A stretch of DNA of 64,000 nucleotides, taken from NCBI GenBank assembly GCA_011109175.1, contig RDEW01000029.1:282158-346157 (forward strand), read 5' to 3'. The notes below the pieces were generated by a model that was given only the letters and a program-made list of their open reading frames with translations, searched no databases and had not been told where the DNA came from. Positions 11,700-61,997 of the stretch are shown here, in pieces; positions within the stretch are counted from its first letter, which is position 1; each line of letters begins with the position of its first letter. A program made the position numbers and the translations under genes. The stretch is from Dicyema japonicum. Taxonomy: Eukaryota > Animalia > Dicyemida.

Positions 11700-12273
11700 T
11701 AAATAAAAATCATTTCATGTGTCAGGATTAATTTCTAGTGTATGTTGTATGGGAATCTGTTTGAGTTTCCGTAGTGTTCTCCATAAGGATGATGTCTTTG
11801 TGTGTCTGTCTACAGACATCAAAGCAGCCTCCCATTTTTTTGTTTTTATTTCTGATCCTTTTGGTAATTTCCTTATTCAGATCTGTAATTTCCGTATTCA
11901 AGGATGTTGTTTTATCAATAGTTTTCTTTAGTTTATTTTTTCTTGCAATGAGGACCCTCGTTTCCGGAGCACGTAATATCCAGGAAACGTTGGAGTTAAA
12001 TCTTTATGAGTAAACTTGGACTCTTGAATTAAAGCAATATCCACTGAGTTGGACTGAAAAAATCGTAAGTTCAATAATCTTTGTTCGAATTCCATTTATG
12101 CTGATTTGGGCAATAATCAATAGCGGTCCTGGATTCGGTTTGACATCGCCGGAAATAAGTAGTAATGCACGACACCATCCACGTCTCAATGAAGAAGGGA
12201 TAGGAATTTTGCGGCTCTTTTTCACATAAATTGTGCAATGCCACCACATCGTAGGTGAGCCACGTAACATTAC
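11700..12273 (-). mobile_element. Internally deleted 5' end of Ingi/Vingi-like LINE (ribozyme, 2A-like motif, APE start, linker)
   Basis: GDVKPNPGP followed by IAQISINGIRTKIIEL; TPTFPGYYVLR; linker SSLWRTLRKLK. Confidence 0.7.
12211..12273 (-). ncRNA. HDV-like ribozyme fold, degenerate (J4/2 C apparently lost)
   Basis: P1 AAUGUUA/UGGCAUU, P2 GUGGCUC/GAGCCGC, P3 ACC/GGU, P4 CACA/UGUG; folded by eye. Confidence 0.5.
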
Positions 12274-12372
12274 TTCAACTATTCATATTTTATTAATAAA
12301 AATAATATTAAAATTTTTATAATAAATTTAATTTAAAATAAAAAAAGTTTCTTAGATATAATAATAAGTGTA

Positions 12373-14194
12373 ATGAATGGCAGGTTAAGCTTATGGATCC
12401 GTCCTCAGCAATTCGAATTCGGTGTACTCAAAATCCAACCAAATTTCAGATTATCTAAAACTGTATTAAATGATATAAATAAACAGAATATTTTCAAACT
12501 TGTCAAATATTTGCGGGAAAAAAACGAAATTTACCCCCTGATGAGGTACCTTAACATTACGACCTAGTTACTCCACGTGGAATTATATTGCAACCAAAAA
12601 ACTCCTTTTGAGTGAAGAATACACGTGGATGTAATACTTCAACTAATTTAAGGTTTTTCCGTCTCTACCAACTATTCGGCGCCAAAAATTTGAAAAAAAT
12701 TAAAAGGGAGGACAAGTTGTTCCAAAATAGTATAATTTCCGTTGTACCCTCAGGGATTGAAAACGGTCACTTGATTACAATCAATGCCATCAAGTTCTCC
12801 CTTTTTTTATTCATCCAAAATATTTTGTGTTACCGTGGGGACCACGACGTGGCTGAGACTCCCCCGGCCGAGGAAACTACGAAAAGCTCTAAAAGGGTAA
12901 CTTTGGAATATATGGTAGAATTTGACGGAAGGGCTAATCATGAGGTTCTTTCTAAGTGAACTGGACAATATTCTTTGTATTTTGTCTCCCGATGACCTCG
13001 ATCGTACTGCCATGGAGTCTTTTTCTTTCCTCGTTGAGGGAATCTGCGAAGGAAGTACCGAAATTCTCCCTTTGATAAAGATTTTGGAGGAAGACTCTGT
13101 GGCTTTAGAAGCTGGGAGAAATGTAAATTTATGAAGCCAAAATAATATCCCCCACTTATTAAAATTATAGGAGATGAATTTGTATGACAGAGGATCATTC
13201 CGCTCCTTCATCAGAAAATACCTGATTAAATGTCCCTTTGGCTCAAACAATTGTTTTTCCAACGGCAAAAATTCCCCGCTTAGCGACTTTTACATTTCTA
13301 AGAGTTTATGTTGGTTAACCAAACTAGAGGACATTAATTCCCACAATAAATTCCCGCGTATTCTCGACAATTTAAGTCTGATACCCAAGAATGACTCGAA
13401 CTCTTACCGACTCATCCTATTTGCTTACTTAAACGACGTGACCATTTCCGAGGACTCACTAAACCACATGAACGTCAAAATTATGAAATGTCAAAATTGT
13501 TTCTTTTACTTCCTGTGCCCATTAAAGTGATTTTCAATGTTACCTCAGATCCCTTCTGATTGAGTCATGCCGAAATTGTACTTTCATCGTTGGCCCCGTC
13601 GAACTGATAATTTCCTTCTCAAAGTGCAGTGACACACGTGCGTCCTGTCTCAGTCGACAAATTATCCTAACAACTTGCCATAGATCTCTCATCTATTTGG
13701 CTACTCCCCAGCGACCTCTTCTTGCCAATAACTCAAATACGACCCTAGTCCCCCTTAACATTTACTACGACACACTGCCACAACAGATGAAGCAAGTTCA
13801 TTTCCTCATCGATATGAACATGTGGAATAGCCCCCTTTTATACAGTAATCGCGATCTTAAGACTTTAGATCCCTCCAATGTGGAGGACCTCCAGAGCTTC
13901 TCTATATTACCCCCAGTAAAGTTTTACCAGCATAGAATTCCGTTTGAAAACTACAATATCGTTAATGTAAATCGTAGATACATTTCCTAGTTACCACGAG
14001 AACTAATAAACGATGACTACTACGAGGCATTGGAGGAACGGAAAAAGCAGAATGAGAAGTTCAGAGAGGCGATTAGGGCTGAAAAGCTGACTGAGGCACA
14101 GAGTGAAAGATACAATGAATTAATGTCATCCGAGTTTGACGAATGGCTAATATTCTCCTTTAATGAAAAGCAATTATCGCAATTAAAATATTAA
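12373..14194 (+). CDS. TBCCD1: TBCC domain-containing protein 1 (multi-exon)
   Basis: LSLWIRPQQFEFGVL, YSTWNYIATKKLLL, KFSLFLFIQ, TPQRPLL, LPPVKFY..IPFE match recalled TBCCD1; 22-24 nt GT-AG introns restore the frame. Confidence 0.8.
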
Positions 14195-14268
14195 TATTTA
14201 TATTTAATAATAAATTTGTTATTTAAAATTTAAATTATTTTTCACAATTCGTGGTTTTGTTTGTTGTG

Positions 14269-15362
14269 ATGGACAACTTTGAAAATATTTCAAATTTTAC
14301 CCCTAAAGTGGAATTTACGAGAGAAGATAATCCGCGTAAATTTCTGTGTGCGAGTTCATTTTCTCTTATGTTTCCTCGTTATCGTGAAAAGTATCTTCGA
14401 GAATGCTGGCCTGCTTTGGATTCAAAATTGGATGAATTGTAAGGCCTCATTTTGATTTTCTAGGGAATCGCATGTGAGCTCAACTTACTTGAAGGATTCA
14501 TGACAGTCTCTACAACTGAAACAACATGGGATCCCTATATGATTATCAAAGCACGTGACGTGATCAAAAACTTGGCCCGAAGTGTCCCTCTTCAGCATGT
14601 TTTCAATAGATTTAAACTCCCAGGCACTTCGTTGTCTTTCTGACGACGTGTATAGCTCAATAGTCAAGATTGGTTCCATGGTCCGTAATAAAACACGTTT
14701 TATTAAACGGAGACAACGACTGATGGGTTCCGAAGGCTCAACTTTAAAAGTTTCTAAAATTCTTCATTTTAGGCCATAGAGTTGTTGACAGGATGTTACG
14801 TGGCCGTTCAGGGAAACACTGTGGCCCTGATAGGGTCACTTGACGGTATACGGGAGGTATTTGCTTGTTTTAGTGTCTTTAGGCAGAAAAGATAGTGACA
14901 GACTGCATGAACAACATCCATCCAATCTACAACATCAAGGTACTTTTGGAAGCATAATTGTAGACTTTGATGGTCAAGACTGAGCTGGCAAAGGATGAGA
15001 GCTTGGCCAATGAGTCGTGGGACAGATTTCTTCCCAAATTTAAGTCAAAATCTTCAGTTCCAAAGAAAAAGAAGGCCAAGAAGGTCAAAAAGCCATATAC
15101 GCCTTTCCCTCCCCCACAGCCGTTGTCGAAGGTTGACATTCAGCTGAGGAGTGGGGAATATTTTATGAATGATGCTGCTAAGAAACGAATGAAGGATAAT
15201 CAGATTAAGGAAATGCAGAAGGAGAAGCGTGCCAAGAGGGAAAAGAAGAGGGAAATTCACGTTGAAGACCAAATTACTATGCCTCCTGTGGAGATGCCTC
15301 CTGTTGATTCTGGGGAATTGGTCAAGTCCATTAAAAAGAAGAATAAAACCAAAAAGAAATGA
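14269..15362 (+). CDS. KRR1: KRR1 small subunit processome component (6 exons)
   Basis: [62 protein letters not shown]; introns 14439-14463, 14599-14623, 14750-14772, 14857-14882, 14940-14963; one missing G near 14464. Confidence 0.95.
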
Positions 15363-60244: not shown

Positions 60245-60699
60245 ATTAACTGAATTATTGATTGTATCAGGTTACTTGTGCGTTTCGCTGGAAAAGTTAT
60301 AAATATTTTGTTTTACGGGGGATTATGTTTTATTTTTTTGAAAAATAAAGCTTTTTATTTTTAATAAATAATACAATTTTAAATTTAATTTTTATTATTT
60401 TTAATTACCAACAATGTTACTTTTACCAAATTATAGATCTACGCTTAGACGAGTAAAAAAGAATCCGTACAAAATAGACTCTGACTGAGTCACCCTCAAT
60501 GTGGGAGTTTGTTGTATTTATATATTGGGGGTTTAAAAAACCAAATCCGTTCTGAAATAGGATTAACGTGTAATCCTGAATATTACCATGTTTTGTGCTT
60601 ATTAGGAATCATTTCAGCATTTACAGCCATTTCATTAATTTAAACAAATACTCTGTCCCTACCGAGAAAGTAGGGTTTTAAACCAACTAATTAGGTGAT

Positions 60700-61500
60700 A
60701 CATCTCTCCAATAGCTCAGAACTCCCCTGAGTGTCTGCCAGCTCTATCTATTCAAGTTGTGACTCAAAACTAGAGACACCTATTCTTTAGCGTAGTAGGG
60801 GACATTCGGTCTCTTGAACATAATCTTATTTACGATTGACTTTGAGCTCCTCACTCTCCGGGTGTACGTTCCAGAAAGAAGGATTTGTGCTTATTTAGCA
60901 TTTTTAGTTGAGAGTTTCACCTACTCTCACTTAGCCTCTGAAATGTTCCAGCAATTTCTCATGCAGGTCGCCGATTTTTTAAGACAAGGCTAAGCAATCC
61001 TGTGGATCTGCGCATTTTCTCAGTTTAGTTCTTAGATTTTTTTCTTTTCAACACAATCTTCTTGATGTGCCAAGAAATAGGAAAACATCATCGTTTCTTG
61101 AGTATATTTTTTGGCCAAAACTTTCCAGATAATTTATGGTCTGTTTTGTGTACTCAGATTCACAGATAATAGCAGCGGACTGTGGTCGCTGCCAATCTCC
61201 TAAAGAGTATTGGTACCTCCCCGTATTCTGTAATAGCAGGCTAAATTAGAAGACGCCAAGTTTATCACATACGAAAGGGAGAGAAGTGATTTTCCTACCC
61301 CCAAGGCCTTCAAATAGCTTCTTCATGAGCTATCTGTTCTTGTTTTACTTCCTAGAACCGAAGGACGTGTTCTTGGAGTTAAGATCCTCTCCTAGAATGT
61401 CCATCGGGTATTCACACAAGAACTCAGAGCATTTGGAGTTAGGATCTTTTTCATAGAATGGTAAGAACTCAACCTATTCATGAATTGAGCGTAACTTATT
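60700..61500 (-). mobile_element. Degenerate LINE APE endonuclease relic
   Basis: GEDLNSKNTSFG and IGSDHSPLLL motifs. Confidence 0.5.
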
Positions 61501-61828
61501 GCCAATTCAATTCAATACATGTATTAATTACCCTGATCCATTCTCTAATTCATCATGAGCGTTGTTAAAGGTCTCCCATTTGTGTCTCTTGCAATGTCAA
61601 ACACGTTTTTGGGCAAAAATAAAAAAAATTCGTCTAATGTTGATTTTGAGTGATAAGTAAAATTTATCGTACGTGATGCTATACAACACTAATATAGGTT
61701 TTCCAGACCATTAATTTTTTAAGAGTAAAAAAACTTTTATAATTTTCTGATTTTCAGCACCTCCTCTACATACCATCAGACCTTTTGCCCAGTACTCGTT
61801 ACACTGCACCACCAGACAAAAAACACAA

Positions 61829-61997
61829 TTTATTTATTTATTAACCCCGGATACACCATCCTGAATCAGCATAAGGGTAAGACGTCCATTACATGCAGTT
61901 GTGGAAACCCCTCCAGTGGAGTGGGGAAAGCAAATGATCCTTTTTCGTGCCGGCTTGGCACTAGGCCGTCACCTAGACAGGTGGATCACATGACGCC
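61829..61997 (-). mobile_element. Ribozyme-headed non-autonomous element, internally deleted sister of 36258-36491; ribozyme core 61935-61997
   Basis: Same head and tail; P1 covaries (GGCGUCA/UGACGGCC); P4 GUGCC/GGCAC; J4/2 CGAAAAA; lacks about 67 nt of body. Confidence 0.8.

Follow-up and report, generated by a model that had tools for sequence, protein, structure and literature searches.

A structured RNA module at the 5' ends of LINEs in Dicyema japonicum

The analyzed 64,000-nt stretch of the Dicyema japonicum genome (assembly GCA_011109175.1, contig RDEW01000029.1, positions 282,158 to 346,157 of the forward strand; hereafter, the window) contains eight copies of an RNA module of about 62 nt. 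The module belongs to the 5' end of compact long interspersed nuclear elements (LINEs) with only one open reading frame (ORF) and of short derivatives that keep the 5' module and the 3' tail. The copies are named after their positions in the window (c36491 and so on), with (-) and (+) denoting the strand (Table 1). [quoted passage not shown] A sequence-only reading of the window had interpreted seven copies as ribozymes of this kind, and all seven sequences are found where that reading placed them; c57592 is the eighth copy. The HDV topology and the association with LINEs and short elements stand; what is shown is the fold with its covariation, its position and one insertion that begins at G1, and descent from a ribozyme, cleavage and the cleavage site are inferred.

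A profile hidden Markov model built from the seven copies recovered all seven and no other significant match in the window. A covariance model was also trained on two copies, the most similar pair (c36491 and c61997), with helices P1, P3 and P4 as structure. This model detected c22011, c26112 and c32642 with expectation (E) values of 3e-11 to 2.5e-6, bringing the number of copies at E<=2.5e-6 to five, as well as c18661 at E 0.008 and, newly, the decayed eighth copy at 57592-57655(+), E 4e-4. With a five-copy covariance model, the most divergent copy, c12273, which was outside the training set, scored 17.8 bits (E about 0.02). In BLAST comparisons between subfamilies, only the module could be aligned (60-90 nt, about 76-79% identity), the bodies behind it being otherwise unalignable; among c22011, c32642 and c36491, too, the module was the only aligned stretch. 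The LINEs of c32642 and c18661 aligned with each other in short patches only, all in the reverse transcriptase (RT) region, with 74-81% identity.

Conservation of the pseudoknotted fold

For structural alignment, each copy was split by hand into P1, J1/2, P2, P3, L3, P3', P1', J1/4, P4, J4/2 and P2', and the pairs were counted. The helix order P1-P2-P3-L3-P3'-P1'-P4-J4/2-P2', proposed in the sequence-only reading, was found, forming a nested double pseudoknot in which P1 and P2 cross. P1 consists of 6 bp, with 38 of the 41 cells in standard pairs and changes on both sides at five of the six positions; examples are GGCGUC/GGCGCC, GGUAUC/GAUCCC, AAUGUU/GGCAUU and GUCAUU/AAUGCC. The covariation of P1 and the pairs previously listed for it are right. 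In c18661, the 5' strand of P1 is absent; this copy belongs to an insertion that was truncated at its 5' end and has a target-site duplication of its own. P2 is paired in all 54 of the 54 cells, with both-sided changes at three of the seven positions. The P2 pairs given previously (UGAUCC/GGAUCA, UGGUUC/GAACCA, UGGUCU/GGACCA and UGGCUC/GAGCCG) are correct and do covary, but the helix is longer than these, comprising 7 bp with one extra G-U or G-C pair. P3 (ACC/GGU) is paired and invariant in six copies, and in c18661 and c57592 its first pair is A-A (P3' GGA). P4 (3-8 bp) differs in sequence in every lineage yet, as previously claimed, forms a paired hairpin in every copy of the hand alignment.

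When 3' strands were swapped among the copies (1854 derangements), the number of paired cells averaged 70.3 and reached 75 at most, compared with the 85 observed. In model-made alignments, where P2 was outside the model, a pair-count tool found 92.2% of the cells paired, against 85.2% after shuffling (reached in 0 of 500 shuffles), with eight pairs changed on both sides against 3.6 in shuffled alignments; the slid controls were at 23-54%. For nine sequences, including one from an octopus (see below), 89.2% of the cells were paired versus 80.4% after shuffling (0/500), and 12 of the 20 pairs had changed on both sides versus 5.5 (0/500), with slid controls at 16-50%. Pseudoknot-free folding yields either P1 and P4 or P2, P3 and P4, one nest at a time; because P1 and P2 cross and both covary, the pseudoknot is real. 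The HDV-ribozyme topology is kept by compensating changes.

A second hairpin, with a lineage-specific sequence, is located 10-40 nt downstream of the module (CCAUCCAG...CUGGAUGG in c22011, 21913-21939 (-), and UCUCU...AGAGA in c32642).

LINEs and short derivatives that carry the module

The LINEs behind c32642, c12273 and c18661 share a layout consisting of a 2A motif, 120-175 nt downstream of the module, an apurinic/apyrimidinic (AP) endonuclease and an RT. Pfam gives only Exo_endo_phos and RVT_1 for these LINEs, and no RNase H domain. The c18661 LINE is a 5'-truncated insertion because its start lies inside J1/2; it is flanked by a 10-bp target-site duplication, AATATTGTTT, at 18651-18660 and 21768-21777. 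The short elements of c36491 and c61997 match the c18661 LINE over about 60 nt at their 3' ends and in the tail, GGGTTAATAA(A)T; they are non-autonomous derivatives of the 5'+3' type. tRNA-derived heads were sought, and none were found.

Each LINE lineage has an AUG among the 10 nt that open the fold (32634-32636, 22002-22004 and 12268-12270, all (-)), in J1/2 or, in c12273, inside P1. The frame from this AUG to the 2A motif is open in c12273 and c18661 and contains a frameshift in c32642. Protein-coding conservation was considered and rejected: relative to c32642/c18661, the frame in which c12273 reads through the fold is offset by one base, and in the short elements the AUG is followed at once by UGA, a stop at codon 2, so that the conservation is in the RNA, not in the protein.

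Several copies show local rearrangements or remnants. The 20-nt insert of c26112 (26029-26056, (-)) is a partial duplication of the segment comprising P2' and the sequence downstream of it, placed before the real P2'. The c57592 element starts directly after the GC..AATAAATAA TAAA-type tail of another element (57545-57575, (+)), the two standing tail to head, which suggests insertion into TAAA-type tails. The lone fragment 80 nt upstream of c61997 could pair with P1' of c61997, in which case the ribozyme would have a long J1/2, like that of some R2 elements; alternatively, it may be what is left of another module.

Table 1. Copies of the module and associated features in the window
Feature	Positions	Strand	Characteristics
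Module copy c36491	36429-36491	(-)	P1 GGCGUC/P1' GGCGCC; P2 GUGAUCC/GGAUCAU; P3 ACC/GGU; L3 UUUCUA; P4 UGCC..GGCA; J4/2 CGAAAAA
Module copy c61997	61934-61997	(-)	P1' GACGGCC, one bulged G; J1/4 UAG
Module copy c32642	32575-32641	(-)	P1 5 bp, GCGUC/GGCGU, closing G-U; P4 8 bp; J4/2 (C)UAAAAA; heads LINE
Module copy c22011	21950-22011	(-)	P1 with one C-U mismatch and closing G-U; L3 UUUUGU; J4/2 CAAAAA
Module copy c26112	26029-26112	(-)	P1 GGUAUC/GAUCCC; 20-nt duplication between A-run and P2'; leader upstream
Module copy c12273	12211-12271	(-)	P1 AAUGUU/GGCAUU, fully compensated; P2 GUGGCUC/GAGCCGC; L3 UACGAUGU; J4/2 AAAAA, no C; heads LINE
Module copy c18661	18661-18730	(+)	5'-truncated at J1/2, no P1 5' strand; P3' GGA; L3 15 nt; J4/2 CGCGGAAAA
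Module copy c57592	57594-57653	(+)	Decayed; P1 GUCAUU/AAUGCC, 5/6 paired; P2 GGAUC/GAUCC; P3' GGA; leader upstream
Lone fragment GTGGCGTCATGTGGT	62065-62079	(-)	GU, P1 5' strand, J1/2 and start of P2
Leader of c61997	61998-62034	(-)	Pyrimidine-rich, about 37 nt, ...GTCTGTTCC..CTCTTCCTAATAGAGT; common to c26112 and c57592
LINE body behind c32642	30441-32508	(-)	2A GDVEQNPGP 32461-32487; AP-endonuclease ORF 31969-32508; RT ORF 30441-31436; frame broken in places
Candidate tail of c32642 LINE	near 29381	(-)	GGTAAATAAA
2A motif of c12273 LINE	12121-12147	(-)	GDVKPNPGP
c18661 LINE	18661-21767	(+)	3107 bp; 2A GDIELNPGP 18828-18854; AP endonuclease; RT ORF 20591-21316; tail GGGTTAATAAT
Short element of c36491	36258-36491	(-)	234 nt; ends GGGGTTAATAAATAAA; non-autonomous
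Short element of c61997	to (TAAA)n tail at about 61829	(-)	About 170 nt

Relatives in other genomes

The best named relative of the RT is a protein of Octopus sinensis (49-51% identity). A 29-kb stretch of this genome (VCDQ01001570.1, L021), obtained through an RT relative, contains two module copies detected with the five-copy model, at 25880-25787 and 28966-28875. In both, P1 (GGCGUU/AACGCC and GGCGUU/AACGCU), P2 and P4 are kept, with new compensating pairs, as is the A-run. Both are closest to c18661, with which they align; as in that copy, P3' is GGA and L3 is long (15-29 nt). In each of the two, the conserved sequence extends upstream for at least 35 nt. Because the RTs are only 49-51% identical, the RNA module is better kept than the protein; an RT identity of about 50% carries no sign of recent transfer, although the host of the window is probably a parasite of cephalopods.

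The contigs of the RT relatives L001-L004 and L022 gave no match to the module model; on three of these (L003, L004 and L022), a 2A motif precedes the endonuclease. Inspection by eye of the regions upstream on the RT-relative contigs revealed no convincing HDV-type fold, and a protein search with the 2A-endonuclease ORF found nothing. A first pattern scan of JGI metagenome contigs yielded 0 matches, and a second one yielded 16 loci, none with a complementary P2, which were discarded as chance matches or an unrelated conserved gene.

Departures from the canonical core and sequences upstream of the module

The standard HDV descriptor comprises a 7-bp P1, G1 paired with a pyrimidine (G1-Y), two C-G pairs in P1.1, U..CG in L3 and CRRA in J4/2 (PMC6326823). 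In HDV-like ribozymes, L3 has 7-8 nt, and cleavage 5' of G1 leaves 5'-OH and 2',3'-cyclic phosphate ends. The comparison with this canon, and the sequence preceding the module, yielded the observations that weigh against a cleaving ribozyme. None of the eight copies passes the canonical descriptor in our own strict implementation. No Rfam match in the whole window reaches the gathering score, and none of the HDV type, which includes the HDV, CPEB3 and drz families, was obtained for two copies at E<=10; the family is thus missed by standard descriptors, as the sequence-only reading had anticipated, with no Rfam model and no canonical-descriptor match for any copy. A relaxed HDV-topology descriptor of our own design gave about 70 matches per strand in the window and missed most of the true copies, so topology alone proves nothing.

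The departure is larger than previously described, extending to P1, which has 6 bp instead of 7, and to the C-G of L3, which is absent in seven of the eight copies. Only in c26112, where an additional U is present, could P1 gain a seventh A-U pair without drawing on the U of P3'. L3 is U-rich (UUUCUA, UGUCUA, GUUUCU, UUUUGU, UGUCUCA, UUACUCA); the missing C-G is that of the metal-binding G-U reverse wobble, and U.CG occurs only in c12273 (UACGAUGU). In the c18661/octopus lineage, L3 is structured and 15-29 nt long (15 nt for c18661 and 29 nt for an octopus copy) and P3 has 2 bp; in one octopus copy, L3 self-pairs into a 9-bp extension of P3. At most 1 bp of P1.1 could form, joining a C of L3 to the G that precedes P4; most copies have 1-2 spacer bases there, and c36491, c22011 and c57592 have no such pair. 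The earlier statement that most copies lack the P1.1 G is partly right: a G stands just before P4 in five of the eight, so that a 1-bp P1.1 is possible in most.

J4/2 is A-rich and 5-9 nt long compared with the canonical 4 nt; that it is longer and richer in A than CRRA had been recognized in the earlier reading. In four copies it is a C followed by one base and then five A's (6-7 nt), and three others have 8-9 nt; CGAA, CAAA or (C)UAA opens it in five copies, with the A-run extending it to 6-9 nt. The C said to start J4/2 in most copies does follow P4 in six of the eight, but is missing in c12273 and in c32642 can pair inside P4. G1 pairs with C or U in six of the seven copies that have P1, the exception being c12273 with A1-U; this copy has a fully compensated P1 and yet A1 in place of G1 and no C in J4/2. 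The G of L3 is strongly conserved among R2 ribozymes, and its replacement by A abolished cleavage in one species; R2 ribozymes tolerate a P1 of 4 nt as well as changes in the spacing of L3 (PMC3774820). The HDV active-site loops of the module lack the canonical form, whereas the helices are under selection across lineages and two animal genomes.

The dinucleotide GU directly precedes P1 in all eight copies and is itself preceded by A or C in six; such conservation would be unexpected if the RNAs start at G1. A pyrimidine-rich leader of ~35 nt ending in AGAGU is located upstream of c61997, c26112 and c57592, copies that differ from one another by about 20%, and its retention in three diverged copies indicates that uncut RNA was reverse-transcribed repeatedly in the leader lineage. 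The earlier claim that the module heads the elements therefore holds as far as the 5'-end association is concerned, but not for these three copies, where the leader and not the fold comes first. The pyrimidine tract of the leader (61998-62034, 26113-26150 and 57571-57593) ends in TAG or AG before GU and has the look of a 3' splice site or else of an initiator of the TCT type; the leader also resembles the pyrimidine-rich stretch that follows P2' of the module.

The 12-bp target-site duplication of c36491, TCATTTAGCAGT (36492-36503 and 36246-36257), stops exactly at G1. This element is inserted in sense orientation in an ankyrin-like coding exon (36246-36600, (-)), and removal of the element with one copy of the duplication restores ...DDSGHLAVFCGNYNITKILVNKNAK; because the joined flanks restore one ankyrin-like reading frame, the insertion borders are sound. 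Its relative c61997, 89% identical, has extra leader sequence upstream. The last 3 nt of the duplication (AGT) match the end of the leader, and the junction could result from microhomology-guided truncation of uncut RNA; by our estimate, it favors cleavage only a few-fold. Target-site duplications were also sought for c32642, c12273, c22011, c26112 and c61997, and none were found.

Comparison with characterized ribozymes and LINEs

In the trypanosomatid elements L1Tc, ingi, NARTc, RIME and SIDER, the L1TcRz/Pr77 hallmark is likewise a fold of the HDV type, located in the ~77 nt with which a single-ORF LINE begins (PMC3185411, PMC4035085, PMC4748587). L1Tc has the same gene order, ribozyme, 2A, endonuclease and RT, and the fold of L1Tc and ingi also occurs on short derivatives, NARTc and RIME, that are reduced to the 5' and 3' ends; the hallmark placement of Pr77, at the 5' end of a 2A-endonuclease LINE and of its 5'+3' derivatives, is that of the module. 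The CACC-loop-GGUG signature of L1Tc, which the sequence-only reading mentioned, was confirmed from published primers and mutants: the L1Tc sequence reads CCCTGGCTCAGCCGG (1-15), CCACC (16-20), TCAA (21-24), CGTG (25-28) and TGGTGCCAGGG (27-37) (PMC4748587, PMC3185411). In L1Tc and in the module alike, P3 is ACC/GGU inside CCACC...GGUG, and P1.1 is a single pair in L1Tc and at most one in the module. Beyond that, the 77-79-nt Pr77 signature (CCCTGGC..., CCACC at 16-20 and CGTG at 25-28) was not found: only CCACC and GGUG are shared, and L3 contains no CGTG. The P1 sequences are unrelated (CCCUGGC, 7 bp, in L1Tc versus GGCGUC, 6 bp), the P2 sequences differ as well, and L3 of L1Tc (UCAACGU) keeps the canonical U..CG, whereas that of the module is U-rich without C-G. 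Further differences are J4/2 of the module, consisting of C and an A-run, and the window LINEs, in which no RNase H domain was found. L1Tc resides in a kinetoplastid host and its cleavage is proven, whereas the module resides in an animal and its cleavage is a prediction.

The ribozymes of R2, R4, RTE and other elements resemble the module in the 5' nested double pseudoknot, the variable P4 and the compensating changes in P1, as well as in their retention by internally deleted derivatives and, in some cases, the overlap of the fold with the ORF start (PMC3774820, PMC5786205). They differ in having a near-invariant L3/P1.1/P3 core and a 4-nt J4/2, in contrast to the atypical core of the module; R2 has no element-encoded bases upstream of the cut, where the module has GU or the leader. 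With genomic and antigenomic HDV, the module shares the helix order, the 3-bp P3 running into P1', the G1-C/U pair and the C after P4 followed by purines (PMC6326823). The window LINEs are similar to Vingi, the sister of Ingi, by size and domain content: Vingi elements are compact, with a length of about 3.1 kb, and their single ORF encodes AP endonuclease and RT but no RNase H; they give rise to 5'+3' bipartite derivatives, and the Vingi 5' end is reused inside short interspersed nuclear elements (SINEs) (PMC5786205, PMC13708176). In the literature searched, neither a 2A peptide nor a ribozyme has been reported for Vingi (PMC3708506), and no HDV-like ribozyme for compact, 2A-bearing, Vingi-like animal LINEs.

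Possible functions of the module

These observations are most economically explained by descent of the module from an HDV-like ribozyme that it has in common with the Ingi group. Its activity would then range from weak, in the short-L3 lineages with G1 and the C, to none, in c12273 and the c18661/octopus lineage. The short-L3 lineages would probably still cut, inefficiently, 5' of G1, the predicted cleavage site; the cut would free the element RNA from read-through transcripts and leave a compact knot at the RNA 5' end, with the start codon inside the knot. Whether self-cleavage occurs, or recently occurred, in at least the main lineages is in our judgment evenly poised. If the module cuts, the sequence rules for the HDV fold would be wider, and an animal LINE group would be tied to L1Tc/ingi by a shared 5' unit. 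The bolder proposition, a working ribozyme that is homologous to the Pr77 ribozyme and has a core unlike those of characterized HDV-like ribozymes (lacking the L3 G-U reverse wobble, with at most 1 bp in P1.1, 6 bp in P1 and a J4/2 that is A-rich and 6-7 nt long), seems to us unlikely, albeit credible. If this were true, the unit of ribozyme, 2A, endonuclease and RT would be ancestral to Ingi/Vingi across kinetoplastids and animals, and current descriptors would overlook a whole branch of the HDV-like family.

Alternatively, the module, possibly an ex-ribozyme, could be structural and non-catalytic, protecting uncapped or read-through RNA from 5' exonucleases, positioning ribosomes at the internal AUG or being recognized by the LINE protein, which would mobilize the derivatives; we hold this to be a serious, if minority, possibility. 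The pattern of covarying helices and drifting catalytic loops is what such a role would leave, as is the lineage-specific L3, long and self-paired in c18661 and the octopus copies, and so is c12273, in which P1 is fully compensated without G1 and the C. The universal GU and the leader retained in three diverged copies point the same way; the AUG that each LINE lineage has in the first 10 nt of its fold, in a frame open to 2A where intact, fits a role in translation, and cap-like protection by an HDV-type fold has been described for R2 templates (PMC13708176). However, the C after P4 and the G1-Y closing pair, which the helices do not need, persist in most copies, one insertion (c36491) begins exactly at G1, in the sister element L1Tc this place is occupied by an active ribozyme, and loss of core bases after insertion is expected in dead genomic copies. 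If the module does not cut, a ribozyme architecture would have been kept for some other task, such as RNA protection, translation start or recognition by the protein of the element, with a bearing on the reuse of LINE 5' ends in SINEs and on the retention of Vingi-type 5' untranslated regions in gene-insertion tools.

An internal RNA polymerase II promoter acting at the DNA level, like Pr77, with an initiator at (A/C)GU and a downstream element in CCACC...GGUGG, would account for the invariance of P3 (in six copies) and its flanks while P1, P2 and P4 vary, and for the GU that always precedes P1, with A or C before it in six of the eight copies; L1Tc promoter activity indeed requires CCACC and the following CGTG (PMC4748587). 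A promoter has no need of pairing, yet 12 of the 20 pairs carry both-sided changes that preserve it, and the CGTG element of L1Tc is absent from L3 of the module. As the sole explanation, a promoter is therefore improbable; by analogy with L1Tc, a promoter role may coexist with the RNA role rather than replace it and would account both for the GU upstream and for the invariance of the P3 region. The remaining explanation, chance resemblance or the coding conservation of a leader peptide in place of RNA structure, appears highly improbable. It could draw on the abundance of relaxed-descriptor matches in the window and on the frame that stays open through the fold in LINE copies, but that frame is offset by one base between lineages, the short derivatives stop at codon 2, none of the 500 shuffles reaches the observed pairing or covariation, the slid controls are only 16-50% paired, and no swap of 3' strands among the copies attains the observed pairing.

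Other features of the window

An inverted duplication links positions 1-4562 with 30650 down to 26650, with 98% and then 90% identity; because the matching sequence includes portions of two distinct LINEs, the event was a segmental duplication and does not represent a single repeat family. The introns of an axonemal dynein heavy chain gene (DNAH7-like) measure about 20-28 nt and argue against an octopus as the host of the window, a possibility that the identity of dynein matches, compared over fragments of similar length only, does not by itself dismiss. The exons of this gene occupy 49737-50971 (+), and the best fragment matches are 55-65% identical.

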